DNA from: Mobula hypostoma
Taxonomy: Eukaryota
DNA: 64,000 nt
Assembly (NCBI RefSeq): GCF_963921235.1
Contig: NC_086106.1
Span: 20,212,001-20,276,000 of the forward strand
Reading direction: 5' to 3'
Positions 13,360 to 36,629 of the stretch are shown here, piece by piece (positions within the stretch are counted from its first letter, which is position 1; the number at the start of each line of letters is the position of its first letter). The position numbers and the translations under genes were made by a program. The notes below the pieces were generated by a model that saw nothing but the letters and a program-made list of their open reading frames with translations, was not told where the DNA came from and did no database searches.

Positions 13360-14181
13360 CACAGCATCAGAAAACCACACAAAAACTCAGCACCGTGGCC
13401 AATGGAGAGATGAGTTTTATGGGATAAAGTGCTGAATGACTTTTACTGAAATATTCGTCTTTCTACAGAACCCCGTAACATCTATGCCGATTACACTTAA
13501 TGCAATTAGTATTCTATATGATATTGTAATACCTTAAAGGGGCCTGGGCCAAAGGTTCTATTAACACTTCTCATCTCCACAGATGCTGCCTGCCTGACCC
13601 GGTTTTCAGCATTTTAAATTTAGAATTCAGCTTTTCTTATTGAATATCTGTTTAACTAACAGTCCACCTATGCACTTGTTTATCTTCTCCTCTGTCCGTC
13701 TGTATGCTTGCTTGTAGCTATGCTTAACCTGTTTGACAGCCAGGTCATTTTCAGCAACAATGAAATATCAATTCCGAAAATGGGAAAATAACTCACTGAT
13801 ACGCATTTTCTGAAGAATGTACATTAATTAATATGCTCCCTTCTTTGATTTGGGATATGCAAAAACATCTCTTGTCATTTGCGTATTTGCTAAAATGTCC
13901 CATTTAGAACAAATAGTGAATGTTTTTCATTGAGTCAAGTGCTGTGAGATAGACTGGTTTTCTCTTCACCTACTTGGTCAAACAATTATTCATAAAATAT
14001 ACAACAGTACAACGCAGGAAAAGGCTAAAATGTTGTGTGGACCATCTAAAAAAACAAATCAAAAACATCCAAACACTAATCCCTCCTACCCGCACAATGT
14101 CAATATCTCCACTTCTTCCTTACATCCATGTGCCTATCTAAACGTCTCTTAAAACCGTATTTGCCACTATCACCATACCTG

Positions 14182-14206
14182 GCCCGGTTCCAAATATTAA
14201 CCCCAA
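14182..14206 (-). pseudogene. TRAJ: Probable remnant of a D-slot TRAJ (LIFGTG core only)
   Basis: ccggttccaaatattaaccc is identical to the core of the Js at 29416 and 31991; no RSS or donor; followed by the spacer and SINE remnant that follow D-slot Js in other cassettes. Confidence 0.45.
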
Positions 14207-14479
14207 AGTTTTTTTTCTTTGATCTAATTTTAGGAAACAACTTTAATCGCTTTCTGAGCTATTTAATTCCAGACCCAAAGCTGATTTGTACAGAATTCCT
14301 GCTCGACTTCACTTCCACAAAAAGACTACAACTCAATAGAAATAAGAATTATCTTGCGCTCCAAGCGAAATCACTGCCCACGTCTCTGTAGGATTTAATA
14401 TTCTCTATGTCAGAGTTCCACCTGTATCCATTATTTCCAGTAAAGTAAAATATGGGTGAAAATGAAAATTTTTATTCTT

Positions 14480-14735
14480 GCTGGTCCTCATTTTATCAGA
14501 CATCTCCTCCTCCCCGTCACATGGGGCTCCTCGGAATGCTGATTTAGTTCCGCATCCCATGGATGTGCGAATCAGCAAGATGATTAGCTGCTATAAGCTT
14601 CCCCCTGTGCAACTGGGGAGCAAAATATTTGGGAATATGTGAGGTTGCAAGGAAAATTATTCGGTGAATAGAATTGCTCTGTGAGCGGGCAGAAGCTCAG
14701 TGGGCCGATTGGCCTTCTATGTCTTATGAAAGTAC
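14480..14735 (+). mobile_element. Decayed SINE, shared cassette marker
   Basis: Homologous remnants lie about 450 bp above D-slot Js at roughly 15545, 19440, 23800, 29895 and 34160. Confidence 0.55.
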
Positions 14736-15126
14736 ACTTCTATTAATTAGCTTTCGAACTTTCACATCTTCGTTAACAGACCAATCAATTCAAATCAATG
14801 ACAGAAAAATAACACACCCAACGTGCCAGGCAGCATCTGTGGAGAGAGGAACTGCGCATATTTCAGGTCTGAGACCCTTTGTCAGAAGTGTGAAAGACAG
14901 TGGACAAGTTGTTCTTAATTTTCAGTGTGGGTGTGAGAGGGATATATCGGGCAACTGGAAGATGATGCTAGCTGTCTAACGCTTGGGTACTTCCACCTTT
15001 TTCCGCCACGGGAAATAACATCCCATAGACTCTTTTCCTATTTGCTTAAACCTAGCATTTAGAATAAATTACACACGTTCGACTTTAATTACGAAGTAAG
15101 ACAAAAATGGCTTTCTTGAAACTTAC

Positions 15127-15189
15127 TCGGTACAATAATCACTCGAGTCCCAGCTCCAAATATTATCTGTTGGCTGCCTCCAAAATTCA
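15127..15189 (-). CDS. TRAJ: TCR alpha J segment, canonical (cassette slot D)
   Basis: NFGGSQQIIFGAGTRVIIVP; RSS cacagtg 15190-15196 / 12 / acaaataca; donor GTAAGT. Confidence 0.94.
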
Positions 15190-16464
15190 CACAGTGCCTG
15201 CCCCCCTTACAAATACACCTACTGGCCTTAAGAATCTCCACTAGCCCTTTCCCAAATAACAATGCAGTGATCGCAATACCCACTAAACCTAAGATACGTG
15301 TTGGTCATCTGGTCTTTATTTTTATAAATAGTTTTAAAATATTTTTAATAACCATCTCTTTCTGTGGACACCACCTCCAAAGCTGCCCCACTCTGCTGCT
15401 GAGTTCCTTTCAAACCGAACATCCACAAAACAACCCAGAATGAAAAAAGATTTACTTGCGCAATCATGTTGTAGTTGTATTTGTTATTATTTCTCCTAAG
15501 ACTTCTATGGAGCTTCGATTTTCAACATTTTGGTTTTGTTCTTCCTCATTTTTTAGTTGTTTGCTCGCCCCAACACCTCCGTAATGTGTTTCTCCCAGAG
15601 TGTTTTGGTTTTCTCCCAGATCCCAAAGATGTGCATTACGGTTAGGTGACTGGTATACACTGCTTCCTGCCGAATTACTGGAGAGTGGGGAGAAGTGGTT
15701 ACAGGGAACATTTGAGAGCAAATGCAAATGGCCTCCCCTTAAGTCGTATGGAAAGAAATTCCTTTTGCCCATTCTCTACATCCTTATTGGCCCTCTAATA
15801 ACTTTCATCCAAAAATGGAGAATAGCGGAAAACAAAACTCAGCGGGTCAGGCAACATCTCTGGAGAGAGAACTAGCGAACATTTCAAGTCGGAGACCCCC
15901 TGTTAGAACAGAGAAAGGGAGAAGGCAGGATGGGTTTCCGTTTTAGGGATGGATTGGACAAGAGGATGATGATGTTAGCTGCCTGATTTCTGAATGACTG
16001 CAGTGTTTTCTGATTCTTTCTCCAATCTCACGCTTTCAGAGATATTCCCAGTGATTACACCATTCGTCCCTTATCAATTTTGCAACGTTAACCTGCTTTC
16101 TTTTTTTTCATCCTCCCTGACTGAACCACAATACACTCAATTCCATAAATACGTAAGGATCATATTCCAAAGGGGGCAATATTTATCGCCTATAAATCAA
16201 TCTGTATGTAAGGAGGCTTTCTCTGAATTTTCTACTAGATTAACAAACTATTTAGATATTTTGATATGTACTATCATATTGATATGGTGAACATCTCTTT
16301 AACTTTATGCATTTTTCTATCTTATCAAACCCTTGTACAGAGGTCACACACTGGACACACCTTTTCCTCTCAATCATGCATAATCTTTGCAATTTTATTT
16401 GAATGCCAAGCCTCTGATATTTATCACCAAAGCAACATTTTTTAACACCGAGAGTCGAACTTAC

Positions 16465-16521
16465 TAGGTTCCACGTTCAGCTTGGTTCCAGATCCAAATG
16501 TTATGATATTGAAGGAATCCA
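16465..16521 (-). CDS. TRAJ: TCR alpha J segment, canonical (slot A)
   Basis: DSFNIITFGSGTKLNVEP; RSS cacagta 16522-16528 / 12 / acagaaaca; donor GTAAGT. Confidence 0.93.
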
Positions 16522-16659
16522 CACAGTACTACACACCAGTACAGAAACATGCTTCTGGTCTCAGATTCTACATACGCCACAGAGTCTTACATTCACAAAG
16601 CACAATTACAGACCCTGCCGCCAGTATTGCATGCTGCCCATCAGATAAATATAAGACAA

Positions 16660-17230
16660 TAATACACAGGAACAGAATTAGGCTATTCGGCTCGTTGATC
16701 TTCCGCTATTTCATCATGACTGATTTATTATCCCTGTCAATCCGCTTCTCCCCGTGACCTTTGAAGCCCTTACTAATCAACACCTATCAACTTTATCTTT
16801 AAATATGTCCATGGACTTGGCCTCCACAACCACCTGTGGCAATGAGTTCCACAGATTCACCACCCTCTGGCTGAAGAAATTCCTCCTCATCTCTGTTCTA
16901 AAGGGAAGCCCTCTTATTCCTAGGCTGTGCCCTCTGGTCCTAGATTCCCCATTATAGGAAATATCCTCTGCGTATCCCTTCCATCTAGGCCATTATATAT
17001 TATGCATGTTTCAATGAGACCACCTTCCGCCGTTCCTCAGAACTCCAGCGAATACAGGCCCAGCGCCATCAAACGCTCCTCATGCGTTAAAGCTCTCATT
17101 CCTGGGATCATTCTCGTGAACCTCTTCTAGACCTCTCCAATGCCAACATATTCTTTCTTAGATAAGGGGGACCAGAACTGCTCACAATATTGCAAGCAAG
17201 GTCTGATCAATACCTTAATAAGCCTTAGCA
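16660..17230 (-). mobile_element. 5'-truncated CR1 LINE, 3' end
   Basis: Minus strand reads YCEQFWSPYLRKNMLALER..., the CR1 ORF2 C-terminal region, followed by a 3' UTR; low decay. Confidence 0.85.
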
Positions 17231-17953
17231 TAAGGTATTATGCTTATCATAAGGTATTAAGCCTTATTACAACCTTCCACTCCTATTATCCTACACTTGA
17301 TCCATAGCCTTCTATGGACTAGTGATTCAAGAGCCTGTCCACATACTTGTTAGTTTTGTAACTGCCTCCACCAAGTTCTGAGACAGACTGCAATCCCTTC
17401 CTGAGTGAGAGAGTTGGCTGGTAATAGTTGTCTCCTGTGTGTGGCTGAACGGCAGATTCTGGGGAGATGTGAGAGGAGTATTTGGAGCATGGATGGGATT
17501 TTGTGAGGTAAGTGAAACTGGGTAGTTGATGATCTACACAGGTTTATGGACGAAAGGTCTGTTTCCTTGCTATATGGCTGTCACTCATTGGGCATTGGCG
17601 ACTCAAGTCCTTAATTGCGCGAGAGTCCCTGTCACTACCACTTCTTCAGCAGTGCCTTCCAGATTACTACATACACTGCATAAATAGAATTTCTTCTTTG
17701 TATCCCATTTAAACATTTACTGGTTACTCTAAGTCTATGCCCAAGTTATCATTATGAATTATGATTCACAGAATTCACCTAAGATTTTATTTGATGAATG
17801 AAATTAGTGTGGATTCAGTTGCTTCCATGGTTTTGGAGCACCGAATCATGTTATGAGAAAGCATAGATGACGTCCATTACCAACAGCATATCATTTGATC
17901 TGAATACCGAATGTGATTAGAATCTAATAATGAATACCGTATTGATAACTTAC

Positions 17954-18016
17954 CAGGTTTAACAATAAGCCTTGTGCCGCTTCCAAACACTAACTTGTCG
18001 ACCCCCCCGGAATTCA
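17954..18016 (-). CDS. TRAJ: TCR alpha J segment, canonical (slot B)
   Basis: NSGGVDKLVFGSGTRLIVKP; RSS cacagta 18017-18023 / 12 / acaagaatt; donor GTAAGT. Confidence 0.93.
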
Positions 18017-18311
18017 CACAGTAAATGAGCCCCTGACAAGAATTCATTTCAGTGGCTCCCCCCTTGTGTGCTATTGGCACCACACATTTATTTCAAACCT
18101 TAAAATATCTTCTTCATCTATTTGGTCATTTTCGTTGCCTCGTTGAGGGAATAATTGGTTTCATATTTGGAGTAATATTTATTAAAAGTATAATGCTTAC
18201 TAGGACCCTCAATTTATCAAATAACTCCTCAAAATACAACCACGGATTTCGAACTTTTGATACACTCTTGCACTAACTCAAGGGAAACGAAGTGAGATAC
18301 TCAGCACTCAC

Positions 18312-18371
18312 TGGGCTCTGCAATCACCCTGTTGTCTCTTCCACAGATTAGCTGGTTGCTTGCATAATTCA
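18312..18371 (-). pseudogene. TRAJ: TRAJ pseudogene (slot C; CGRD motif, RSS destroyed)
   Basis: NYASNQLICGRDNRVIAEP; heptamer gacaatg 18372-18378 with shortened spacer; donor GTGAGT; flanks homologous to 20661 and 26547. Confidence 0.78.
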
Positions 18372-18975
18372 GACAATGCTGACCACTTAGAAAATAAAAC
18401 TTTGACAATCGAAGATTGGCTGATTGAAGCAATAATGTAGATTACTCCCCGTTTTTGATACTTATATATTCAAAGCATAAGGAATTATGCAGATGCTAGA
18501 AATCCATAGCAATATACACAAGATGGTGGAAGAACTGAGCAGATCAGGCAGCATCCATGGAAGTGGATGTTTTGTGCCGAGACCCATCTTCATGACTGGA
18601 GCAATACATACTGTGCATGTATTGAGCTGTTGTCAGCTGCTGTCCCTCACTTTCTCCACATCACGTTCTCTCTCTTTCTATCTGTCTCTCTAATTTTTAT
18701 CTCTGCCTGTTAACCTGTCCAAACTCTCCAGCCACCCATAGCTTCCTTTAACAGGGGTGATAACCAGTTAATTGCGAGTACAATGTTGGAACAATCCTGA
18801 AAACGGGGAATTGGTTGGTTGTCCCGATTGTGCCGAAAACCGTGTTCTAAATTAAGATACAGCGGCCACATCTCACGGCATTGCCATATTTGCTGTAAGG
18901 CTGCAATTCGAATAAATGACAGTTATATTTAATTTCAATAGGAGTTGTAAGTATGATTGCTTTCTTAACACTTAC

Positions 18976-19038
18976 TTGGTACAACAATTACTCTAGTCCC
19001 CGTTCCAAATATTAACTTCACGCTGCTAGCAGAATTCA
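18976..19038 (-). CDS. TRAJ: TCR alpha J segment, canonical (slot D)
   Basis: NSASSVKLIFGTGTRVIVVP; RSS cacagta 19039-19045 / 12 / acaaataca; donor GTAAGT. Confidence 0.94.
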
Positions 19039-20039
19039 CACAGTACCTGACCCCCTTACAAATACATCTATTGGCTTTAACCATGTCCCAATGCCTTCTT
19101 CTAAGAAAATGAAATATAGCGACAGCAACGCCCATTAAACCTCAGATTTTTCTCGTCAATCTCTTCGCCTTTGGTAAATAATGTTTAATTATTTTCCAGC
19201 TATTTAATTCCTTTGAATCTGTGCAATCATGCTGCATAAATGTATTGAATTCCAGAAAATAATGCAACATAATTAAAAGTAAGCAAGATTTATCTGGGCT
19301 CTGGAAACAAAATAACTGCCACTGTTTGCACGTGATTTTCTGTCGTTTCAGAGTTCTCTGTGTATCTTTGATTCCCAGTAAAAAGTTTATAGGTGAAAAA
19401 TTGAGTAACCTCTTCGCTGTTCACTCTCATTTGTTCAGAGATTCCCTCTCCCCCTACGGTGCACTTTCTCCAATCTGAGAAAGAGGGAAGACTAGTTAGC
19501 TTTAAGTTTTAGAGAGGGTCACGTAGTATGGATTGGACAACTGGAGGATGATGTCATTGTCTGAATTCCGTGGGTTTCTGCATTGTTTCTGATCTCACAT
19601 TCTCAGAGATATTCTCAACGACCCCACCATCCCTTCCTTATCCTCATCTGAAATTTTAACTGGTTTTCTCAGATTCCTCCTTCCAAAACTGATCTCATTC
19701 CTTCAATTCTTTTAACACCCAACAACCACATTCAAAGTGATAGGGAAAGCACCTATAAGAGAGCATTTTTATATCAATATTTTCCAATGAATTAATAAGC
19801 CGTTGAGTTATTTGTGTTTTTTTAATACATTATCTAAATGTTGAAAACCTCTTTAAGTTTAGGTTGTTTTGGTATCCCATCAATCCTTGCACTGTAGTCA
19901 ACTACAAAGACACACCCATCCACTCAATCATTCCTAATCTCAACAATTCGCTTTAAATGTGTAGAACATGATATACATTAACAAAATAAAATTTGAAGTC
20001 TTCAGAATTTCGACGCATCACATGATGAATTGGCCTTAA

Positions 20040-20068
20040 TGGGTTCCACCCTCAGTTTGGTTCCAGAT
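20040..20068 (-). pseudogene. TRAJ: TRAJ remnant (slot A; 3' half only)
   Basis: SGTKLRVEP followed by donor TTAAGG; FG and RSS lost. Confidence 0.62.
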
Positions 20069-20297
20069 TAGAAGCTATAGTTGCGAATTATCAATCATAT
20101 ACGTTCAAATATTCATCTTGCATTTTACCTGATGAATCAATTCAGTGCAGCCTGAGTTATCTTCACGTATTACTGATACCTAAGTAGTTTATGACAAAAT
20201 ATAGCTGACATCTATTGGTGTCTATTTCCCAGTTCATGTCAGGTTGCTCAAGTTACAGAATGGGATTGGAATCTAATTTTGAATATTGATAACTTAC

Positions 20298-20360
20298 TAA
20301 GTTTAACAATAAGCCTGGTGTCGCTTCCAAACTCTAATTTGCTGAAGGGTACAGAGACCA
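20298..20360 (-). other. TRAJ: TRAJ open reading frame with atypical FGSD motif (slot B)
   Basis: VSVPFSKLEFGSDTRLIVKL; RSS cacagta 20361-20367 / 12 / gcaagaaca; donor GTAAGT. Confidence 0.85.
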
Positions 20361-20660
20361 CACAGTAAATGGCTCTTTCGCAAGAACACATTTCAATTGC
20401 TGCTCCCTGTGCACTATCGGCATGACATATTTAATTTCAGCAATAAAATAGCTTCATCATCTGCTTCGTAATTTTGTTTGACAGTTTAGGATAACAGCTG
20501 CTTTTCCGATTTGAGGCACTGATCATTCAATGGAAAATGTTATTGGGACCCACAATTTATCAACACTTGATGAAATTATGAGTAGAAGTTTCCAATTGTT
20601 AACGCACTCTTGTACTAACTGATGAAAATTACCAAAGTAGAACATAGATTCAGCACTTAC

Positions 20661-20720
20661 TGGGTTGCACAGTCACTCTGGTTCCACTTCCAAATATTAG
20701 TTTTGTGCCCCCAGCATTCA
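20661..20720 (-). CDS. TRAJ: TCR alpha J segment, canonical (slot C)
   Basis: NAGGTKLIFGSGTRVTVQP; RSS cacagtg 20721-20727 / 12 / acaaaattc; donor GTAAGT. Confidence 0.94.
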
Positions 20721-21191
20721 CACAGTGTTCAACCCTCTTACAAAATTCTCCCCGCCTATTCAATGTTGGCAGACTGTGTGAAACAATATTGTAGATGGAT
20801 ACTCAGTGTATCATATTTATTATATATATATTGTCTTCTATTCTTCCGTCTGCGCACCTCCCTCTCTGTTCCTCGCTCTTATCTCCCCGCTCTTCCTCTC
20901 TCCCTCTCTCCAGCTCCATCTAAACGTATTAGTGTCTCCTCGTCTGTCTGCAGTTTTATTTAACTTGCAAAGCTGGAGCAAAAACTCTGAAAATGCGAAA
21001 ATAATTTTATGATAGAATGTATTAAGTAACATACTCTTTCTTGATGTGGGCCATTAAGAAACATAGTATATTATCTAACAGGAGATGAGGTTACATTTAC
21101 ATTTTTTCTGAAGTCTTGTTTTTAGAATTTATAAGATGGTTTGGGATTTTAATCAAGAATTCTAGGGAAGAATGGGTTTTTTGAAACTTAC

Positions 21192-21254
21192 TTGGTTCGA
21201 CAATTACTCGAGTTCCGGTTCCAAATATTAACTCCCAGCTCCCTCCAGAATTCA
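21192..21254 (-). CDS. TRAJ: TCR alpha J segment, canonical (slot D)
   Basis: NSGGSWELIFGTGTRVIVEP; RSS cacggtg 21255-21261 / 12 / acaaataca; donor GTAAGT. Confidence 0.94.
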
Positions 21255-22630
21255 CACGGTGCTTGCCCCCTTTACAAATACACTTTCTAGTCTTAACAAT
21301 ATCCCCGTGGTTTTCTTCCAAATAATGCAATTCAGCGACCTCAATGACCCTGAAATTTCATTTTTTCGTCAATCTGGCCTTAGTTTATGAAGCAATTACA
21401 ATAATTTTCACACCATTCAAATTCACTTCATTGCAGCCCAAGTTCCTACTCATAAAGTCAGTAAGTTCCTGTTCAACTTAGTCTTCACACACAGATATAT
21501 CATAATAAGAATACATGGTCCCATACATGATTTAACTATGGGACCTAAAGGAAATAATTTTATTAGCTTGTGTGTGATTTTATTCATCTTCAGTGTTCCC
21601 TCTGTATTTTTTTAAAATCCCGGTAACAGGTGTTTAGGTCACACAATAAAAATATATGGTCCCGTGATTTATCTATGGGCCCCAAAGGAAATTAATGTGT
21701 AAGATTGTGTGCGATTTTATTTTCCCTCGGAGTGCCATCTGCATGATTAATTTCTATAAGCAGGTGACTAGGGTGAAAGATATTGCTGTAACTTCTCTTG
21801 AGTATGCTCGGGTAGTTCCCCCTTACTGTCCTATGGGTTTGATCGGGTTATCTCCAGTATCTCCAACATCCCACAGATCTGCAGGTCGGTAGATTAATTG
21901 ACAGGTGTCAACTGCGCCGAATGATAATGGAAGGCAGAAGTGTTTGAAATTCTCGGAATAGAAGTCACAAGGAAAATCTGTGGAGGAATTTGATTGCTTT
22001 GTGAACGGCAGAGGTTCTTGTGCTGACTAGACTTCTTGAATGTCGTTTTGAAATAAATCCCCTTTGCCCTCTTTCTAGAAGGTTTACTTTCTTATTGACC
22101 TGATCAACACTTTAATTCAAAAACAGTGAACTGGGAAGCAAAAAGGCAAGCTGGGGTTAACTTCTGAGTGTTCCAAGCATTTTCTGATTTTTTTTTTGTC
22201 CCCAAATTCATCTTGTCGGAGATATTCCCTCTGACCCCTTTATCCCTCCACAGCCACTCTGCGACTTTAACTTGTTTTCTCTTTTCACTTAACCACACAA
22301 GAAGAATTACCCTTAAGTCAATAAATGCTGAAGAATCATATTTAAAGTGACAGTGGACATCTCCTATAAATCATTCTGTCGGTACAGAAGCTTCCTGTTA
22401 ATTGAATTGGTTATTTATTATGTATTTTCATAGCACCACGTTTTGAATCTTCTTTTTAGCTTGCGTATTTATATCCATTTTATCAATACCTAGCATAGAA
22501 GTCACCCACTCCGACAAACCTCATCTTCTGATCATTACAAGTTACTTTTATGGCACCGATCTGACGCTGATCATCAAATTTCATTGTGAATTCCTGGCAT
22601 GTGAGACATTGCATAATATACCAGACTTAC

Positions 22631-22687
22631 TGGGTTTCACCTTCAGTTTGGTTCCAGATCCAAATGTCAGTACATTCATGTTATTCA
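22631..22687 (-). CDS. TRAJ: TCR alpha J segment, canonical (slot A)
   Basis: NNMNVLTFGSGTKLKVKP; RSS cacagca 22688-22694 / 12 / acagaaacc; donor GTAAGT. Confidence 0.93.
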
Positions 22688-22970
22688 CACAGCACCACAG
22701 ACTTGTACAGAAACCCCTCACCTAGTCCCAACTTCAATATTCATTCTATCTAGAACAAAACAGATCATTCAGCCATATGAATCCATACTTATTTAAGTCC
22801 CCTTCCATTGCATCTGATGAATTAGTGTTGGAAGAATTATTTTCACGTGTTATGGCACTTATGAATTTAATGGTAAGATATCACTGAAATCTACCGTGAT
22901 CCTTTACATATCCCATAATATATTGACAAGGATATAGAATTTCTTTAAACATCGATTTTGAATATTAACA

Positions 22971-23033
22971 CCTGAACAAGATAAAGAATTCTGGTGTCAC
23001 TTCCAGCATTAATTTGCAGAGCTCACCAGAATG
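22971..23033 (-). pseudogene. TRAJ: Heavily decayed TRAJ (slot B)
   Basis: ctggtgtcacttccagcattaatttgc aligns with ctggtgtcgcttccaaactctaatttgc of the J at 20298, and the flanks align too; heptamer reduced to aacagag; no donor. Confidence 0.55.
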
Positions 23034-23283
23034 AACAGAGCAACCACTTCTCCCTCTCAAGAGCTCAATTTAGTGGCTGCTCAATGTGCATTGTTGTCTT
23101 TGGATATTTCACTTCGAAGATTAAAGATTGACAATTTAGCAAAATGGATTATATTAGATTTTGGAGCATTATTCATCCGAAGTCCGATCGATACTGGGGT
23201 CCATAATTTATCAGGCACCTCTATAAAGTACATGCATGACTCTATACAAGAGAAAATCTCACTTAAATCAATCATTTAAAATA

Positions 23284-23300: not shown

Positions 23301-23349
23301 AATGATTTAACCAGCAGTTCGAGGAGAAAATGCATTTCGCAGCACTTAC

Positions 23350-23412
23350 TTGGTTGGACAATTATTTGAGTCCCAGTTCCAAAGAGTAACCCCGTGCTGG
23401 CTGTATTATTAG
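23350..23412 (-). CDS. TRAJ: TCR alpha J segment, canonical (slot D)
   Basis: NNTASTGLLFGTGTQIIVQP; RSS cacggtg 23413-23419 / 12 / acaaataca; donor GTAAGT. Confidence 0.93.
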
Positions 23413-23799
23413 CACGGTGCCTAACCCCTTTACAAATACACTAAATGGTCCCCACTATGTCCACGCTACCTTATTTCAAATAATGCGACTTATTGGCCGA
23501 AATGTCCATTATATCGAAGTTATTTTTCTTTATTCTAGCTTCATTTTAGTAAATAGCTTTAAATAATTTTACAATCTTCTAAATCCTATTGCTGAACCCC
23601 AGATCTGCCCCATGCAGTCAACTAAGTCCTGTTGAACTTGGATTGAATCAAGGAATCAAGCATTATTGCAACCGTGTTTCACTACCAAAAATGTTTGGCT
23701 AGGTTTCTGTACGATTTAACTTCGCTTGACAGATGCCTCTGTATGTTTGATTCCCAGTTAAAGATGCTTGGAAGAAAAAAAATCGCATTTTTGACTCCC

Positions 23800-25848: not shown

Positions 25849-25903
25849 AGTGTCTCATCTTCACTAGTTCAAGACTCAAATGTCAGTACATTTAGGTTAT
25901 TCA
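25849..25903 (-). pseudogene. TRAJ: TRAJ pseudogene (slot A; stop codon)
   Basis: NNLNVLTFES*; heptamer cagagca 25904-25910; donor TTAAGT; paralog of 22631. Confidence 0.75.
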
Positions 25904-26546: not shown

Positions 26547-26606
26547 TGGGTTCTACAGTCACCTTGGTTCCACTTCCAAAGATCAGTTTGTTGCCATCAT
26601 AATTCA
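26547..26606 (-). CDS. TRAJ: TCR alpha J segment, canonical (slot C)
   Basis: NYDGNKLIFGSGTKVTVEP; RSS cacggtg 26607-26613 / 12 / acaaaatac; donor GTAAGT. Confidence 0.94.
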
Positions 26607-26944
26607 CACGGTGCTGAACCCTCTTACAAAATACCCCATGCTAATCAAACATTGGCTAACTGAACGAAGCAACATGACAGTTAGCAACTCATTTCTTGCA
26701 CATTCATATTACCTATCTATGCAACTAAATGTCTGTCTGTGCTCATCTCTCTTTCTCTCTAGAGTCCACCATGTCTCTACTTCTCCATCTTTTACTCTGT
26801 ATCTATCTATCTGCATATCATCCGTATGTGGCTTTAAGTAACATGTGTGATGGCCAGCTTATTATCAGTGAAGATACAGTAACAAATCTGAACATGCGAG
26901 ATTTTTTTTTGATTGAAGGACAGAATGGTTTTCTCACCACTTAC

Positions 26945-27007
26945 TTGGTTCAACAATTACCCGAGTCCCGGTTCCAAACGTTAGCTCAGTGTTGACTCCA
27001 TAACCCA
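26945..27007 (-). CDS. TRAJ: TCR alpha J segment, canonical (slot D)
   Basis: GYGVNTELTFGTGTRVIVEP; RSS cacagtg 27008-27014 / 12 / acaaataca; donor GTAAGT. Confidence 0.94.
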
Positions 27008-28295
27008 CACAGTGCCTGGTTCCCTTACAAATACACCCATTGGGTTTCATTAAAACAGTCGTCCTCTAAACATTACAAGGCTTCTTAAGGCTAAGAATGC
27101 TTCTTCAATCCACTCTATTTTTTTTCTGAATGGGTTGAAATCTTTATGAAACCTCTCTAATTTCCTTGACTCCAGCCCTATATCTGCACTATACAACATC
27201 GAATTTCTGTCCAACGTAATTCCCACAAAATAATTTAGCAAGAAAAAAAATGGTAATGTGCATAATCCAAAGGAAATCAGTGCACTGGTATCAATGAAAT
27301 TTTATTCCTTCTCAGAGATTCTCTGGATATGTGATTCTCAGTAGAAAAAGTTCAGAGTTTATAAAGATTTCCCTCATTTCCCTATCGTTTGCCCTTACTC
27401 GCTTGGTCCTATTAAATTCCATTTTAATTTTCCCTAGAATCATTACACCTTCATTGAACAATTAACCAATTCCATTCAATTCAGAGAATGGTGGTAACAC
27501 TCAGCAAGGGGATACACTATCTGAGAGCAGAGAGAGGAACATGGTGAACAGCGGAGTCCATTCGTCAGAATCAGGAAAGGCAAATGACACTACGGTTTTG
27601 AGCTTCAGAGAGGCTGGGGTTGTGAAGGGGGGGTGGTGTGGGTGGGGAGGGTGGCGGGTGTTGGGTGGAATAACTGGTCAGCAGGAAGGTGAATGCCATC
27701 CACCTGACATCTGAGTATTTCCAACATTTCCTGCATTAATCTCCAACGTCACACAGTCAGAAATATTCCCAGTGTCCCTGCTTTGTTTGATGCACGGTAG
27801 CCAATTTATTACCAGTAAAGATGTAGCAACAATTCTGAAAATGCGAGATTGTTGTTTGTTTCCTTTCCGTTTTTGGCTGTAAGATGCTTCCTTCCCAGTC
27901 TGTCCACAAAGTGAACTTGTTTTTCTAACTTTCCTCTTCCCTGCACTGATCCCATGAATCTCAGTTCCAGAAATGCTCAAGAAGCACATTCAAAGTGACA
28001 ATCTACACCTCCTATAAATCACTCTCCAGGTAAGGAGGCTTCTTCTGTATTTCTATTGGATTAACAAGCTGTTGAGTTATCTGCTACCTTATTTTAATAG
28101 TGGCATATTTTGAACAGCTTTTTAAATAACTCCTGTTTCCCACCTTAGAAACCTTGCACAGAATGGACTCAGCATGATACACCCACACTAGCAATCACTA
28201 ATAATCTCTATAATTTGTCTTTAATGACGATGAAAAATGCACATAAAAGCAAGCTCTGCAGAAATTAGACAAATGACATAACAAGTTGGATTTCC

Positions 28296-28351
28296 TGGGC
28301 GTTACTTCAGTTTGGCCACAGATCCAAATGTTATCACATTGAAAGTATTCA
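28296..28351 (-). pseudogene. TRAJ: TRAJ pseudogene (slot A; stop, dead RSS and donor)
   Basis: NTFNVITFGSVAKLK*; heptamer tacagca 28352-28358; donor GGAAAT. Confidence 0.8.
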
Positions 28352-28656
28352 TACAGCACTGCCAATATACAAATACTACCCAGACCCCAAATTCAACTCG
28401 TTATGGAGTCTTAGATTCCTAGAACACGAAGCAGTTTCTTTGGCCCACCATGTCCGTGTCAATTTAAATTAGAATATCTAGATCTCATTTTATATGATAT
28501 ATCATATCTGTGTAGATTCAGTTCTTTTCCCCTATTAGTAGTGATGTATGATGCAGCATATAGCTGAAATCTCTTGGCGCCCATTGCCTACTTCATGTTA
28601 GGATGACTAGAATATCGAATTTGTTTGAAAACTAATTTTCAACATTAACATCTTAC

Positions 28657-28710
28657 CGGGATTAACAATAATTTAGGTGCTGCTTGCAAACAGCAATTTA
28701 TTGAGCACTG
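28657..28710 (-). pseudogene. TRAJ: TRAJ pseudogene (slot B; stop, RSS deleted)
   Basis: LNKLLFASST*IIVNP; donor GTAAGA intact; no RSS found. Confidence 0.7.
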
Positions 28711-28981
28711 AATTTAGTGGCCGTTACCAGTGCACTATTACCATTGCCAATTACATTTCTAAATACTAAAATCACTTCATCGCAGATACGGATTTGATTA
28801 GGTTGGAGAAAATAAAGCTTATTTTGAACCATCATTCCTGCAAAATACAATGCTTGCTGTGACCTAGATTTCAGAAAATTCTCCCTGTAAGTATAAAGAC
28901 GGGTTTCCAACCATTAACCAACACTGGCACCAACAGATGGAAACTGAAGTGGGAAATTGCAGTAGGAATGTCAACACTTAC

Positions 28982-29041
28982 TTGGTTCTACCGTCACTAT
29001 GGTTCCACTTCCAAATATTAGCTCGTTGCCTGCATAACTCA
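28982..29041 (-). pseudogene. TRAJ: TRAJ with intact coding frame and donor but no heptamer (slot C)
   Basis: SYAGNELIFGSGTIVTVEP; donor GTAAGT; heptamer position reads caaaata; nonamer acaaaatac at 29065-29073. Confidence 0.85.
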
Positions 29042-29415
29042 CAAAATAACCCTCTAACCCTCTTACAAAATACAGCCTTCCAATGCAATATTAGTTAATC
29101 GTTGAAGCAATAATGCAGATAGGCACTCATTTTAGCGTATTTATTTTCTATATCTATTAGTCAATCGGTACGTCCCCCTGTGCATCTATCTGAATCTCAC
29201 TGTTGCTTTATAGCTCCCTCTTACTTTACATATCCATCTTTTTTTTTTCTGTCTACCTATCTGGATATTTTCTGCCCCCTCCTGTAGCTTTGTTTTACCT
29301 AGTAACAGGGAAACTTATTAGTGAAATTTATCATTATTTATGATCAGGGAAAATGAGGCAATAACTCTGAGTACTCGACTATTTTTTGTTGCTGATTGGC
29401 CTTCTCAGTACTTAC

Positions 29416-29478
29416 TTGGTTGAACAATTACTCGCGTGCCGGTTCCAAATATTAACCCAGTGTTCCCTGCATAATCCA
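29416..29478 (-). CDS. TRAJ: TCR alpha J segment, canonical (slot D)
   Basis: DYAGNTGLIFGTGTRVIVQP; RSS cacagtg 29479-29485 / 12 / acaaataca; donor GTAAGT. Confidence 0.94.
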
Positions 29479-30834
29479 CACAGTGCTTGACCATCTTACA
29501 AATACACACACCGCTTTTAACATTGTTAACATCGTCTTACTCCACACATGCAATGTAGCGAGCGCAAACCCAACACAATTTAACATTTTTTCAAGATACT
29601 TTCATTTAAAAAAAAAGTTTTAACCATCTATTCAGCTCAATATCGGCCTTATGCAGACAATAGGTTCGTATGCAATTTAGCTTCCATAAGTGAAGGTAGC
29701 AGAATAAACAAAATAGGATTTATCTGTTTGATCCAAAGAGAATCATTGCGTATATTTTTGTGTGATTTTATTGCTCTTTAGAGTTAAATCTGTATCTTTG
29801 ACTCTCAGAAAAAAAAAATCTGTATGGCTGAAAATTATTTCCGTAATTTTTCTATTGTTCGCCCTTGTTTGCTCAGTCATTTCTCTCTCTCTCTGCCCTG
29901 CCTCCCTAGGGTGCTCTGTCTTTTTCTCACATTCCTAAACTATGCGAGATGATAGGTTAGTAGCCCGCTGTGAACTGCTCTAAGTGAGGTGCGAGAAAGA
30001 ATTGTCGAGGTTATGGTGAGAAAAGGTATTAAAGAAAATTTGATGAGGGATTGATTACTATATGAACAGACCGAGACACTTTGGCGTGACTGGCCAACTT
30101 CTATGTCTAATGCTAATATATAATTTTTGCACTCTCCTAGCAATCTTCCCAAAGTTATGGACGTAGTGTTATCCATTGAAAATCAGATAATACAGGAAGA
30201 TTTCAATAGATCAGAGAGCGTCTGGGAGAGAGAAGCAGTGAATGCTTCAGATCAAAAGCCTTTGATTAAAACTGGGAACGAGAGAAGAGAGGTTGGTTCT
30301 GGGCATGGCAGAGATTCGGGGAGAATGGATTGGATTGCCATCTGCCTAATCTCTGAGGTTTCCAGTATTTTCTGAATTTGCCTCCCATCTCACTCCATCA
30401 GAAATGTTCCCAGTGACCCTAACGTCCCTCCCTACCTCCTCTGCAACTTTGAATTGATTTATTTATTTTTGTATTCCCTACACTGACCCCACTACCCTCA
30501 AGACAGGAAATGCCCAAGAATCTTATTCAATTTAACAGTATGCATCTCCTGTAAATTATACTTCAGACAAGGAAGCTTCTTTCGTATTCTCTGTTGGATT
30601 AGCACACTGTTGAATTAATTGGCTACTCATTACTGTAGTCTAATGGCTAGGGATTTTGTACACCTCTTAAGTTGTTTTTATTTCTATTTTATTAAACTTG
30701 TGCACAAGCACCTACTATAATACTTTCCACTACCCAATCTCTTTTAATCTCTAACGTTTGCTTCTAATGCCAGCAACTCGACCTCCATCAACAAAACTGC
30801 ATAAGGTACCTAGGCTGTAGTGACACAACCTAAT

Positions 30835-30895
30835 AAACTTTCTTCACTAGCTTCAGATTAATTTGTCAGCACTTTGAAATTATACTGAACTCAAA
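30835..30895 (-). pseudogene. TRAJ: Heavily decayed TRAJ (slot A)
   Basis: tcttcactagcttcagattaatttgtcagcac aligns with the 25849 pseudogene; caaagcaccatagaccagtatagaaaa is the matching RSS relic. Confidence 0.5.
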
Positions 30896-31210
30896 GCACC
30901 ATAGACCAGTATAGAAAAACCTTAGGTGGTCCCAAACTCAACCCACGTTATAGGTTCTTCGATTTCCCCGGCATGAGATAGGCTTACGGTCCAGCACTTT
31001 CAGGCTTATTAAGTTAACTTTAAATTAACATCGATAATTCCATCCGATAAGTTGGATCTGTGTAGATTTTAGTTGTATATAAGTGTTAGCGGAGCATACG
31101 TAAGTTATTAAAATACAAATGAACTCTCTCAGCGCCCACTGCTTACATCCTATTATATTGACCAGAATATAGCACTTGCTTGAAACTGAATTATAATATC
31201 GCCACCTTAC

Positions 31211-31273
31211 TAGTATTCACAATACGTCTGGTGCCGAGTTCGAAAACATTTTAGTCCAGTCCTCCAGAAACCG
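31211..31273 (-). pseudogene. TRAJ: TRAJ pseudogene (slot B; stop, FELG motif)
   Basis: VSGGLD*NVFELGTRRIVNT; heptamer cacgata 31274-31280 / 13 / acaaaactc; donor GTAAGG. Confidence 0.8.
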
Positions 31274-31582
31274 CACGATAAACGACCTGCCTGACAAAAC
31301 TCCGTTTCGTGACTGCTTCCTGTCAACTATTGCCATTGATTATTTTATTTCAAAGAAACATTCATCACTTACTTAGGAATTTTTTCTTGATACATTGGCA
31401 GAATAGTTTACTTTCAGATTCCAGGCATCATTCATTCAAAGTACAATAATTGTTACTAGAACCCACAATTAATTAAATGTCTCCTCAAAATATAACCACG
31501 AATGGTCAATTATTGACAAGCTTTTTCATTCACAGATGGAAACCATCAATATAGACCGCATATTAGGGATGTCTGCACTTAC

Positions 31583-31639
31583 TGGGTTCTACAGTCACCT
31601 TGGTTCCACCTCCAAATATTAGCTTGTCTCCATAGTTCA
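31583..31639 (-). CDS. TRAJ: TCR alpha J segment, canonical (slot C)
   Basis: NYGDKLIFGGGTKVTVEP; RSS cacagtg 31640-31646 / 12 / acaaaaaac; donor GTAAGT. Confidence 0.94.
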
Positions 31640-31990
31640 CACAGTGCTGAACCCTCTTACAAAAAACCCCAGGACAATTTAAAACTAGCTAACTGAATGA
31701 AGCAACATGGCAGTTAGCAACTCATTTCTTGCACATTCATATTACATATCTCTGTAGCTACATGTCTGTGTTAATTTCTCTTTCTCTCTATCTCTCTGTC
31801 TAGGGCCTACCCTCTCTCTACTTCTCAATCTTTTACTCTGTTTATACATCTGTATATCCATCCGTATGCCTGTGGTTTAAATTAACCTGCGTGATGTCCA
31901 GTTTATTATCTGTGAAGATGCAGCAACAATTCTGAAAATGCGAAATATTTTATTTTGAGTGAAAGACAGAATGGCTTCCTCACCACTTAC

Positions 31991-32053
31991 TTGGTTCAAC
32001 AATTACCCGAGTCCCGGTTCCAAATATTAACCCAGTGTTGACTTCATTGCCCA
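31991..32053 (-). CDS. TRAJ: TCR alpha J segment, canonical (slot D)
   Basis: GNEVNTGLIFGTGTRVIVEP; RSS cacagtg 32054-32060 / 12 / ccaaataca; donor GTAAGT. Confidence 0.94.
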
Positions 32054-32890
32054 CACAGTGCCTGGGTCCCTTCCAAATACACCCTTTGGTCTTTGTTAGA
32101 GTCTTCCTCTGAACATTGCAAGGCTTTTGATAGCTACGAATTCTTCTTCAATCTAATCTATTTTTTTTTCTGAATAGGTTGAAATCTTTCTGAGACCTAT
32201 ATAATTCACTTGACTCCTGCCCAATACCTGCAGGACACAACATCGAAATCCTGGCCAACTTAGTTCCCGCAAAATAATAAATCACGACAAAAAATAATGC
32301 TTATATGTATGATTCAAAGGAAATCAGTGCACAGGTATCTATGTAATTCTATTACTCATCGGAGTGCTTTCTGCATATATGATTCTCCGTAGAAAAAGTT
32401 CAGTGTTGAAAAAGATTTCAGTAATTTCCTTATCGTTCACCCTTACTTGCTTGCTCCTAATAAATCTCATTTTCATTTTCCTTAGAATCAACACATCCTT
32501 ATTGAAAAACTAACCAATTCCATTCAAAGCAGACAATAATGGCAACACTCAGCAGGTGATACAGTATCTGAGAGAAAAGGGAGGAGCATAGTGAATAGTG
32601 AAGAGCATTCGCCAAAATTCAACCTATATTGTGTACTCTTAGATTCCAAGAACTTGAAACAGTCACTTCGGCCCGCCATGTTCATTTGTATTTAAATTAA
32701 AATATATAGATTTAATTTTATCTGACGAATCATATCCTTGTAGATTCAGTTCTTTTCACGTATAGGTAGTCCCAATGTATGTTATTGCAAGATATAGCTG
32801 CAATCTATTGGCTTCCATTACTCATTGTATGTTAGGATGGCCAGTATATCGAATTTGTTTGAAAACTCATATTCCATATTAACATCTTAT

Positions 32891-32953
32891 CAGGATTAAT
32901 AATAAATTTGGTGCCGCTTCGAAACACCAACTTATTGATCCCTGAAGATCATA
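32891..32953 (-). pseudogene. TRAJ: TRAJ pseudogene (slot B; FRSG motif, donor AT, RSS lost)
   Basis: *SSGINKLVFRSGTKFIINP; heptamer position ttaagca, but spacer aatgatcccctg matches that of 17954; donor ATAAGA. Confidence 0.78.
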
Positions 32954-33267
32954 TTAAGCAAATGATCCCCTGAGCTTGGATTAAAGGCTGTCCCAGTGTC
33001 CCCAGTGCACTATTGACAATGCTAATTTTAACCCAAATATAAAATCAACCTTTCACCTATTCGTCAAGTGACCGTCATTAATCTGGAGAAAAAAGCTTAC
33101 TTTCAGATTTGAAACATTATTCCTGCAAAATACAATGTCTGCGGAGAGTCAGATTTCAGAAAATTCTCCCTGCAAATATAAACACGAGTTTACAACCGTC
33201 AACACACACTTCCTGCACTAACAGATGGAAACCGAAATAGAAGTTGCATTAGGAATGTAACACTTAT

Positions 33268-33327
33268 TTGGTTCTACCTTCTCTCTGATTCCACTTCCAA
33301 ATATCAGCTTGCTGCCTGCATACTTCT
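33268..33327 (-). pseudogene. TRAJ: TRAJ with consensus heptamer and FGSG but dead splice donor (slot C)
   Basis: KYAGSKLIFGSGIREKVEP; RSS cacagtg 33328-33334 / 12 / acaaattag; donor ATAAGT. Confidence 0.85.
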
Positions 33328-33677
33328 CACAGTGCTCAAACCTGTGACAAATTAGAACCTTCGAATGCAATATTAGGTGATTGCTTGAAGTAATAATGCA
33401 AATAGGTACTTATTTTAACGTGCTTATGAATTGGCCAATTAGTATGTCCGCCTCTGTATCTATCTGAATCTCACCGTGTCCCTGCAGCTCACGCCCATCT
33501 ACATATTTATCTATTTTCTTCTTTCTGTCTATCTGTCCGTATACCTGCCCACCTGTCGGTAGCTTTGTTTCAGTTGTGTGATTGACAATTTATTATGTTC
33601 GAAAATGTAGTGAAAATTCTGAGTAAGCGAGTTTTTTTTTTGTTGTTGTCAGATGTAGAGGCCCTATCAGTACTTAC

Positions 33678-33740
33678 TTGGTTGAACAATTACTCGAGTG
33701 CCGGTTCCAAATATTATTTCCCTGTTGCCTCCATAACCCA
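33678..33740 (-). CDS. TRAJ: TCR alpha J segment, canonical (slot D)
   Basis: GYGGNREIIFGTGTRVIVQP; RSS cacagcg 33741-33747 / 12 / acaaataca; donor GTAAGT. Confidence 0.93.
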
Positions 33741-35104
33741 CACAGCGCTTGACCCCCTTACAAATACACACACCGCTTTTAACATTGTTGACAATGCCTT
33801 ACTCAGCATAATTCAATTAGTGAGCGCAAAGCCATCTCCATTTAATATTTTTCTTCAAGATATTTTAATTTTATTAAATAGTTTCATGTCTTTTACTACC
33901 TGTCCTGCTCAATATCGGCCTCATCCAGACAATAAGTTCGTTTGCAACTTAGCTTCTATAAGCGTACATAACATAATCATAAAGTAAGATTTATCCGTAT
34001 TACCTCAAGAGAATCATACACATAATTTCTTATGATCCTTTTCTCCTTAGAGTTACCTCTGTATCATTAATTCTCAAAAAACATCTTATTGCTGAAAGTC
34101 ACTTCCGCAATTTCTGTCTCGTTCGCCCTCATTTGCTCAGACATTTCTATCTCTGTCCTGTCTCCCGAGGGTGCTCCTTTTTTCTAAATCCCAAAAATAC
34201 GCGGGTCTGTAGGTTCATAGTCTGCTTTGAACTGCTGCAGGTGAGGTGGAAGGAAGAATTGTCGAGGTTGTGGTGGGAAAAGGTATTACAAAAAATTAGA
34301 AGGTGAATTGATTACAATATGAGCAGGCAGAGACACAATGGCCCGAGTGGCCTTCTTCTATGTCGTATGATAACATATCACCATTGCACTCTTCCAGCAA
34401 CCTTCCCAAAGTTATTGACCTCTCAATCAATTCTATGGAAAATCACATAATCGTGGAAGAATTCAGCAGGTCGGGCAGCGTCAGTAGAGAGAGAAGCAAT
34501 GAGAGCTTCAGGTCAAAGATCTTCGATTATAACTGGGGAAGAGAGAAAAGAGCTTCGTTCTGAACTTGAGGGAAGGTTTTGGGCGAGTGCTTTAGAGATG
34601 GGAAGATGTTGCCATCTACCTAATTTCTGAGTGTTTCCAGCATTTGCTGCTTTTGTCGCCAATCTTATTTTCTCAGAGGTATTCCCAGTGGCCGCTCCAT
34701 CTCTTCCACAACAACTTCAACTTGATTTGTCTCTTTCTTCCTGCACCAATTATCCTGAGGTCAATAAATGTCCAAGAATCATATTCAAGTTGCAGTATAC
34801 ACTTCCTGTAAACTGTTCTCTGAGTGAGAAGGCGACATCTTCAATCGCTATTCGATTAATAAAATATTCACTAATTTGGCTACTTTCTACCTCATTTTAA
34901 TAGTTACCAGTTTTGAATGCCCCTTGAAGTGTAGTTATTGGTTTCCTCATGTTAAACCATTGGTAGAAATCACTTAATAGGTTATACTCTCATTCACTCC
35001 TAATCTCTACAATTTTATTTAAAAAAATGTAAACCCACATCTAACACCAGAACTACATTCCGACACACATAATGTAGGGACGTTACATGACGAATTGGAC
35101 TTAC

Positions 35105-35161
35105 TGGGTTTCACCTTTAAATTGGTTCCAGATCCAAATGTTATCTGATTGATGTTATTCA
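35105..35161 (-). CDS. TRAJ: TCR alpha J segment, canonical (slot A)
   Basis: NNINQITFGSGTNLKVKP; RSS cacagca 35162-35168 / 12 / gcagaaact; donor GTAAGT. Confidence 0.92.
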
Positions 35162-35457
35162 CACAGCACTACACACCAGGGCAGAAACTCCTTCCCTGGT
35201 CTCATATTCAACTTTTGCTACAGAGTCTTATATTCATACAGCACAATGGAAGTTTGGTCACCATGCCCATGTCCAGTTGTTAAAACATATAAATTTCATT
35301 CCATGTAACGAATCGGTGTAGATTTAGTTGTTTTCACATATTGTGTACTTTTCTGTTACTACAGAAAACAGGGTAACCGTTTGTTATTCCTTTCCAAATG
35401 TAATGTAAACCAGGATATAGAATTTGCTTGAAAACTAATTTTCAATATTGGTTAACA

Positions 35458-35520
35458 CAAGCATTAAGAATATGTCAGTGCCGCCTCCAAATACTAATTT
35501 GATAAGCCCTCCAGAATACA
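35458..35520 (-). pseudogene. TRAJ: TRAJ pseudogene (slot B; FGGG kept, FR4 and donor degenerate)
   Basis: YSGGLIKLVFGGGTDIFLML; RSS cacagaa 35521-35527 / 12 / acaagtagt; no in-phase GT donor. Confidence 0.78.
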
Positions 35521-35756
35521 CACAGAAATAAATACCCTCACAAGTAGTATTCCTCCATATCTTGATCAGTTCGGAAAATAGCTTTTTCTTTCTGCATATC
35601 TGGAGCCTTATTTATCAAAGTACAATGCTTACTGAGATCCACAAATAATCATGCACCATCCCAAAAATATAAGCAAGGGTTTCTAATCTTTGACATACTC
35701 CTGCACTAACTATTGGAAAACACTGAAGGAAGCAAACATGAGGTGTGCCAACTTAC

Positions 35757-35798
35757 CGGTTCAAATTCCAAATATTAAATTGCTGCCCCCATAATTTA
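35757..35798 (-). pseudogene. TRAJ: TRAJ pseudogene (slot C; about 18-nt internal deletion, stop)
   Basis: NYGGSNLIFGI*; donor GTAAGT at 35751-35756 intact; heptamer lost. Confidence 0.72.
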
Positions 35799-36275
35799 CT
35801 CCTTGCCCGACTCCTATGTATACTTCTTCCTTATCATTTTGCGATTTGCTCTAGTTCTATACGGTTATGGGAAACAGTGACATATTTTGATTCGAGTGGT
35901 TGCTTATCCATCTCCTCCCTCCCCCCTCTCTATCAAGCTCTCTTTATATCCTTCTAGAAATGTTGTCCGTATATTTGTCTGACTATCTAGTTTTCTCCTT
36001 TTCCATCCCTTCCTTCTGTCCATCTATCCTGTTATGTATTTGCCTGTCTATATGTGTCTGTTTGCATAACTAATTGCTGGAACATGGTGTTCGACTGAGT
36101 TTTGTTTGGTTGCTCTTGGTGAAATCGCCGTTGGAACATAATTTATACGCATTTTGCTTAGGAAGATACAAACTACTGCATATCCCTTGGATTTTTAAGT
36201 GGTCCAATCTATTAATTAAAGTTAAAATGTACCTTTTTACTGAGTTATGAGAACTAATACAAAAATCGCACTTAC

Positions 36276-36338
36276 TGGGTTCTACAATTAGTCTAGTTCC
36301 TCCTCCAAATATCAGCTTGTTATTGCCTCCAAGATTCT
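36276..36338 (-). CDS. TRAJ: TCR alpha J segment, canonical (probably a divergent slot D)
   Basis: NLGGNNKLIFGGGTRLIVEP; RSS cacagtg 36339-36345 / 12 / tcaaaaata; donor GTAAGT. Confidence 0.93.
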
Positions 36339-36629
36339 CACAGTGCCCGGCCCTCCTTCAAAAATACTTTCTGGCCATACCAGTGCCTGTCTTATCTGTG
36401 AAAAATGCAGCCCATCCTTCACAAAGAGCTTTCACAAAATATAATGCTATCAATTTTTCTAACCTGAGAATATCAATTACAAAGCCGATCCATAATTATG
36501 AAGGATAAAGCATCTTGAGAATTTTATCACATCATTTAACAGAAGTTACACGCAATATTAAAAACTGATCACATTCTCTGTACTGTCCAAGGTAAATTGT
36601 TCTTTAGGATGTGCCATTTATTTACTTAC

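Follow-up and report, generated by a model that had tools for sequence, protein, structure and literature searches.

A 64,000-nucleotide stretch of the Mobula hypostoma genome (NCBI RefSeq assembly GCF_963921235.1, contig NC_086106.1, positions 20,212,001 to 20,276,000 of the forward strand), hereafter the window, contains an array of joining (J) segments, assigned from their anatomy to the T cell receptor alpha (TCR-alpha) locus, in which a unit of four segments, designated A, B, C and D, has been multiplied about ten times. The D copy is intact in every full unit, whereas most copies of A, B and C are dead. Taken as a whole, the array is best explained as an old amplified TCR-alpha J (TRAJ) unit that has evolved by birth-and-death, with its D copies held by selection, and we put the probability of this explanation at about 65%. 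All coordinates below are those of the window.

To identify J segments, the window was translated in six frames, which gave about 60 FGxG-type J peptides, on the minus strand only, and it was searched with a general J profile, which returned 86 J-like elements. Each J carries a nonamer, a 12-bp spacer and a heptamer at its 5' side, forming the recombination signal sequence (RSS), followed by the FGxG motif and a GTAAGT donor at its 3' side. Judging from this anatomy, the minus strand of 13.9-36.4 kb is part of a TRAJ array, and since all J lie on that strand it would be transcribed from high to low coordinates. The intact copies of the array (n = 17) all have the 12-bp RSS spacer and a heptamer ending in GTG, a framework region 4 (FR4) of length 33 (33+1 nt from the Phe codon to the donor) with no stop codon, an FGxG motif with S, T, A or G at its third position, and a phase-1 GT splice donor reading AGTAAGT or GGTAAGT; at least one of the features of a functional J is missing from each dead copy. 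With an RSS position weight matrix that had been trained on 30 J from other parts of the window, the intact copies scored 11.7-22.9, as compared with a mean of 22.1 for the J outside.

The distance from heptamer to Phe takes values of 20, 23, 26, 29 or 32 nt across the window, in classes 3 nt apart, the sole exception being a duplicated J pair (44748-44848 and 48017-48115) with a distance of 28. Each slot of the unit has its own class, with 23 for A, 26 or 23 for C, and 29 for both B and D, and most J coding ends on the minus strand of the window start with TG. Positional precision of this kind, with a precise RSS phase and J length classes, has been reported for the J-alpha elements of fish and sharks (Giorgetti et al. 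2023, PMC10322711), and the ray window shares with that description both the 3-nt classes and the predominance of coding ends starting with TG. The subject of that work is the predictability of junctions, and not the amplification of a cassette or the differential loss of its J segments.

Every element between 13.9 and 36.4 kb was typed as A, B, C or D with slot-specific nhmmer profiles, each including 200 bp of flank, and the assignments were clear, with 130-198 bits for the best profile against 30-70 bits for the runner-up (a 2- to 4-fold difference). In the direction of transcription, the cyclic order D-C-B-A is kept without exception throughout the array. The unit measures about 2.5 kb, with internal spacers of about 0.3, 0.25 and 0.25 kb and a long spacer of 1.3 kb between A and the next D, and the spacers are homologous from unit to unit. 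The array comprises nine D-bearing units (K1 to K9, numbered by increasing coordinate), one lone A (K4b) and one D remnant split by an insertion (K0). Units K9 to K5, K3 and K2 are full, K4 lacks C, which has been deleted, and K1 consists of D only. The elements are as follows.

13936-14205, minus strand: K0_D, dead remnant at the 3' edge of the array; FGTG part at 14183-14205, 3' end and donor flank at 13936-13991, with an insertion of about 190 bp between them
15118-15219, minus strand: K1_D, intact, with FGAG; C, B and A of K1 absent
16455-16549, minus strand: K2_A, intact
16560-17942, no strand: B-to-A spacer of K2, enlarged by about 1.1 kb and containing an interspersed repeat of very high copy number at about 16710-17100
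17944-18045, minus strand: K2_B, the sole intact B
18303-18399, minus strand: K2_C, dead; heptamer ends in GTC, FGSG changed to CGRD
18966-19066, minus strand: K2_D, intact
19998-20068, minus strand: K3_A, dead; 3' half recognisable, donor lost
20289-20390, minus strand: K3_B, a non-canonical open reading frame with FGSD and with Leu in place of the terminal Pro, its RSS and donor being intact
20651-20745, minus strand: K3_C, intact
21182-21284, minus strand: K3_D, intact
22622-22717, minus strand: K4_A, intact
22928-23120, minus strand: K4_B, dead remnant without heptamer, frame or donor; GGC>GAC and CCT>CTT in common with K3_B
23340-23442, minus strand: K4_D, intact
24731-24828, minus strand: K4b_A, intact lone A without D, C or B upstream
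25794-25985, minus strand: K5_A, dead remnant; lesion in common with K7_A
26196-26283, minus strand: K5_B, dead; frameshift, stop, donor lost; GGA>GAA in common with K7_B
26538-26632, minus strand: K5_C, intact
26936-27036, minus strand: K5_D, intact
28285-28373, minus strand: K6_A, dead; lesions in heptamer and donor, Gly changed to Val, frameshift
28651-28708, minus strand: K6_B, dead; RSS deleted, FASS, stop
28973-29070, minus strand: K6_C, frame and donor preserved, RSS broken by a 4-bp insertion and by loss of the heptamer
29407-29507, minus strand: K6_D, intact
30819-30975, minus strand: K7_A, dead remnant
31206-31299, minus strand: K7_B, dead; stop, Gly changed to Glu
31574-31668, minus strand: K7_C, intact, shorter by one codon
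31983-32082, minus strand: K7_D, intact
32612-32653, minus strand: K8_A, 5' flank only; J removed by a deletion of about 0.8 kb
32886-32943, minus strand: K8_B, dead; heptamer lost, FRSG, donor AT
33257-33351, minus strand: K8_C, dead; donor GT changed to AT, FGSGI
33668-33769, minus strand: K8_D, intact
35095-35191, minus strand: K9_A, intact
35468-35547, minus strand: K9_B, dead; 1-nt deletion in FR4, donor lost
35758-35799, minus strand: K9_C, dead; heptamer lost, deletion and stop
36266-36368, minus strand: K9_D, intact, with FGGG; the most diverged D
25386-34600, minus strand: tandem duplication of two units (about 4.9 kb), the first copy spanning about 25386-30351 and the second about 30352-34600

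An earlier note on this DNA, made from the letters alone, had described the four-J order with homologous spacers, and both the slot profiles and the spacer alignments bear it out; the positions that it gave correspond to J exon 3' ends and agree with our re-derived coordinates. In the lesion table, D is intact in 9 of 10 copies, A in 4 of 9, C in 3 of 7 and B in 1 of 8, that is, 17 intact among about 34 recognisable copies. The note's counts for D (nine intact and the edge copy, which proves to be split by the insertion, lost), for B (one canonical copy, at 17944-18045) and for C agree with these figures, a fourth C (K6_C) having an intact frame and a broken RSS. Its four intact A copies were also recovered, but out of nine instead of eight, since the profiles detected further A remnants. 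The newly found remnants are A at 25794-25985, 30819-30975 and 32612-32653, B at 22928-23120, and both parts of the edge D. Of the array copies, about half are dead, as against about a third of the J-like elements elsewhere in the window.

The age of the array was read from the divergence of its units. Pairwise divergence is mostly 0.36-0.46 differences per aligned site, with the exception of K5/K7 (0.20) and K6/K8 (0.23), and the D-to-A blocks give a star-shaped maximum-likelihood tree whose terminal branches are 0.26-0.42 substitutions per site long. Only these two sister pairs are firmly placed (support 100/100), while all deeper forks have support below 80. They reflect the latest event, a single two-unit tandem duplication of K5/K6 that gave K7/K8, with breakpoints in the long A-to-D spacer. 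The array is thus an old burst of amplification followed by one later two-unit duplication. Its starting point was an ancestral unit of about 2.5 kb, 5'-D-C-B-A-3', in which the J segments lay 0.25-0.3 kb apart and A was followed by a spacer of 1.3 kb; transcription of the minus strand would proceed in the direction of TRAC. This unit was multiplied in ancient times, most likely through unequal crossing-over whose breakpoints fell within the long spacer, in one burst that left at least six or seven lineages, before K7/K8 arose from K5/K6. Each J copy has since been either held by purifying selection or left to near-neutral drift, as in birth-and-death evolution; the D copies in full units have all been held, and most A, B and C copies escaped constraint early and decayed independently of one another.

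The D copies carry a record of constraint. In their FR4 (FGTGTRVIVxP), the proportion of synonymous differences (pS) is 0.39, equal to the divergence of the spacers (0.36-0.46), while that of nonsynonymous differences (pN) is 0.11, giving a pN/pS of 0.28. At the end encoding complementarity-determining region 3 (CDR3), pN/pS is 0.96, the copies differ at 40% of sites, and the nine germline ends are all distinct. The D copies have therefore been kept by purifying selection on framework, RSS and donor, with the CDR3 end free to change. Among intact copies of all slots, the core differs from the slot consensus at 12.6% of sites and the flanks at 32%, with no core indels, whereas in dead copies the two values are 24.8% and 27.6%. 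Why D in particular should be favoured we infer rather than observe: selection would act on what a D-type J contributes to the receptor, with its conserved FGTGTRVIV framework, its nine distinct CDR3 ends and its long 29-nt class.

The similarity of core and flank divergence in dead copies indicates drift since close to the time of amplification, and most dead copies, including all dead B, have been drifting almost since then. The B losses were largely separate events. No lesion is common to every dead B, which rules out one ancestral lesion for this slot. Within the FGxG motif, the first Gly codon is GAA in K5 and K7, GCA in K6 and CGA in K8, and remains GGA in K3, K4 and K9; among dead B copies, a good heptamer persists in K3 and K5 and a good donor in K3, K6 and K7, and K9 has its own 1-nt deletion. 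Inherited lesions are confined to K5/K7 (GGA>GAA) and probably K3/K4 (GGC>GAC, CCT>CTT). With two pairs sharing lesions, B has been lost at least four to five independent times, not seven. The suggestion in the earlier note that differing lesions speak against an early ancestral loss of B is upheld by the three distinct substitutions at the first Gly codon, and comparison of the lesions between copies gave these four to five losses or more rather than one or two ancestral ones spread by duplication. The sister copies of C in K6 and K8 died separately, by an RSS and a donor lesion respectively, and K2 and K9 have lesions of their own, while among A copies K5 and K7 share a lesion, K3 and K6 were lost separately and K8 disappeared through the 0.8 kb deletion.

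B may have been largely redundant with the adjoining D, which belongs to the same 29-nt class and has a similar 5' coding end together with a stronger nonamer, and this redundancy, with the weak nonamer of B, is a plausible cause of its early release. A stronger form of this idea, in which B was already marginal before the amplification, so that all copies drifted and the one intact B is either a needed copy or a lucky survivor, is possible, and we hold it only tentatively. The seven dead B copies have a core divergence (0.21-0.27) that equals that of their flanks (0.18-0.34), as expected from early release, all B nonamers contain a weak TCTTG core, and the RSS of the intact B scores 15.1, well under the mean outside the array. 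On the other hand, there is no common disabling lesion, and heptamer, FGxG or donor is intact in several dead copies each, which points to a structurally intact ancestor; K2_B seems constrained, with 13/97 differences in the core against 23/98 in the flank, although only at p of about 0.1. Moreover, a marginal B would account for the fate of B and not for the constant retention of D.

To compare the slots while allowing for shared ancestry, we modelled loss on the cassette tree as irreversible, giving each slot a rate of its own, with p values obtained by simulation under a common rate, and varied the coding by treating deletions as losses or not, K6_C as intact or not, and three off-tree units as included or excluded. 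Four rates were preferred to one at p = 0.010-0.046, below 0.05 in every coding. Per unit of neutral divergence, the estimated loss rates were 0-0.6 for D, 1.6-2.0 for A, 2.0-3.8 for C and 5.4-6.2 for B. When corrected for choosing the best of four slots, the contrast of D with the rest gave p = 0.006-0.075 and that of B with the rest p of about 0.09-0.11, and rate differences among A, B and C gave p = 0.22-0.36. When the count is restricted to six independent lineages, intact copies make up 6/6 for D against 6/18 for the remaining slots (Fisher p = 0.014), whereas B (1/6) and the combination of A and C (5/12) show no significant difference (p = 0.6). The slot effect is therefore one of D retention, real but modest, and the near-total loss of B cannot be told apart statistically from the losses of A and C. 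Thus, of the claim in the earlier note that survival is not random, the part concerning D holds with ancestry modelled (p of 0.01-0.05 for four rates against one), and the part that would set B apart from A and C does not (p of 0.2-0.6).

It is doubtful that these figures reflect no true slot effect at all, only chance and shared ancestry in a small sample noticed post hoc. Such a reading draws on the six to eight independent lineages, on the corrected D value reaching 0.075, on the non-significant differences among A, B and C, and on the inheritance of lesions in two dead-B pairs and one dead-A pair. It has to contend, however, with the intact D of all six lineages plus that of K1, with heterogeneity that stays significant under all codings of the loss model, and with every D having been held by selection across about 0.3 substitutions per site.

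The D copies also share a position. The earlier note called D the first J of the cassette, which depends on where the cyclic unit is cut, although D is indeed the first J after the sole long spacer. We consider it unlikely that this position, whatever the sequence of the J, explains survival by making the segment more accessible or more used, through a germline promoter or easier access for RAG. In its favour, besides the invariable place of D after the long spacer, a long upstream gap goes with survival inside the array (p = 0.02), and the lone A at 24731-24828, also located after a long spacer, is intact. Outside the array, the distance to the upstream neighbour is unrelated to survival (medians of 840 and 884 bp for 28 intact and 15 dead J-like elements; n = 43, p = 0.73), so that J survival there shows no overall dependence on a long upstream gap, and K9_D is intact despite another intact J only about 250 bp upstream. 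Sliding identity between deep pairs peaks at the J themselves (D 0.80-0.83, C 0.69-0.76, A 0.70-0.73, B 0.64-0.68), and no conserved promoter-like block was found in the spacers, the A-to-D spacer having an identity of 0.47-0.68 over a background of 0.5-0.6, which is a weak test for short motifs. A stronger D RSS was likewise looked for and not found, the scores of intact D (14.6-19.9) being no higher than those of intact A (14.8-21.5) and C (11.7-22.9); B nonamers are consistently weak. The suggestion of a local promoter or of RSS accessibility made in the earlier note is thus unsupported by spacer conservation, RSS strength or gap effects outside the array, and our results lean towards selection on D-type sequence over position.

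A related and improbable idea is that D retention reflects periodic accessibility or usage, the first J after each long spacer serving as a preferred entry for successive V-to-J rearrangements. If this were so, one working J would be kept per step with the other three as passengers, and the array would exhibit a position rule for J usage in the TCR-alpha locus of an early-branching vertebrate. The weakest alternative is that gene conversion or recent copying has homogenised and repaired the D copies: although D elements are 72-85% identical, above their flanks, their silent-site divergence of 0.39 matches that of the spacers and their CDR3 ends differ at 40% of sites, which rules it out for practical purposes, since non-sister D pairs all have an identity of 85% or less, their excess likeness is limited to constrained positions, and near-identity at silent and flanking sites was not found among them.

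Some hints of expression come from contigs of three public runs of one study, presumed to be RNA, that match parts of 15.1-21.1 kb and that cannot rank J usage. Run X1 covers 26 of the 30 bins of this interval at low depth, spacers included. One of its contigs (X1#1) begins at 15127, the last base of K1_D, and another (X1#6) agrees with the germline from the intron as far as position 19034, which lies 4 nt within the coding sequence at the 5' end of K2_D, and then runs on for 30 non-matching letters. A contig of run X2 (X2#15) matches 20661-20719 exactly, that is, the K3_C exon minus one base, followed by 34 non-matching letters. With the runs taken as RNA, contig ends at the exon boundaries of K1_D, K2_D and K3_C fit rearranged or spliced TRA transcripts. 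A further X2 contig joins 21100 back to 18970 (2131 bases), near the 3' end of K2_D, and this joint may be an assembly chimera of the paralogues K3_D and K2_D. In the same three runs, the repeat at 16710-17100 has a summed contig depth of 13,000-45,000, compared with 0-20 in the surrounding sequence, and internal joints are numerous. The window holds no other copy of this repeat, and a tRNA-derived short interspersed element was rejected as the K2 insertion, as ARAGORN found no tRNA-like structure.

Several points weigh against our main explanation. The statistics rest on about six to eight independent lineages and on a pattern noticed post hoc, with corrected D values up to 0.05-0.075 in some codings. 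Deep nodes of the tree are poorly supported, and hidden shared ancestry, for instance of K3 and K4, could reduce the number of independent events. The RSS of D is no better than that of intact A or C, and nothing mechanistic was found that would make D more heavily used. The public contigs give no ranking of J segments. Finally, D-type sequence and D position are fully confounded within the array.

Beyond the units themselves, the cassette family ends at about 13.9 and 36.4 kb, and only weak, core-only matches occur farther out in the window. Intact J at 10740-10841 and 36622-36714 flank the array and match the D profile with 67-68 bits over the J core, their flanks being unmatched; on the strength of these core matches, they may be older relatives of the cassette D/C pair. 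The peptide at 10783 reads B-like (DKLVFGSGTRLIVEP), and 14267-14288, 85 bp upstream of the dead edge D, holds a short remnant of an FGSG-type J that contains a stop codon. Other duplicated multi-J units, with 72-82% identity, are found at 466-9229, 42923-48159 and 55687-60746, with periods of about 5.9, 3.3-3.4 and 3.3-3.5 kb, respectively. Local tandem duplications have built most of the TRAJ array in the window. Runs of N occur inside the J array at 42639-42812 (174 bases) and 55432-55565 (134 bases).

In the birth-and-death model of immune multigene families developed by Nei and co-workers, genes arise by tandem duplication and are independently retained or turned into pseudogenes without homogenisation, so that synonymous divergence equals neutral divergence. 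The ray array conforms to this model, with copies that diverge independently, a pS of 0.39 against 0.36-0.46 in spacers, and intact and dead members intermingled. The model does not itself predict that one co-duplicated member is always kept, and the asymmetry of D is the only unusual feature in this respect. The ray array is thus a duplicated TRAJ block evolving by a known process, with a modestly supported preference for D, and by itself it leaves the current understanding of TCR loci unchanged. Its value lies in providing a cleanly dissected case from a cartilaginous fish of a TCR-alpha J repertoire built by amplification of a multi-J unit and then pruned. With nine old D paralogues under selection beside neutrally decaying siblings of known relative age, it constitutes a natural experiment on what keeps a J, whether sequence, RSS or position.

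Our literature search turned up no publication describing the TRAJ array of a ray or a shark, and the closest comparisons are with bony fishes. Channel catfish has 125 TRAJ in subgroups of up to 12, of which 4 are annotated as pseudogenes (PMC8656973), and Atlantic salmon has 128, many of them duplicated, with 9 annotated as pseudogenes (PMC8559430). The ray array resembles both in being a long J-alpha array shaped by local tandem duplication into subgroups of similar J, in the 12-RSS, FGxG motif and donor of each J, and in the presence of some copies with non-canonical FGxG or pseudogenes. Unlike them, it has a defined four-J unit repeated about ten times, about half of whose recognisable copies are dead, and a decay that depends on the slot; what is particular to the ray is how clearly the unit is defined, how large a share of its copies is dead, and that one slot is uniformly retained.

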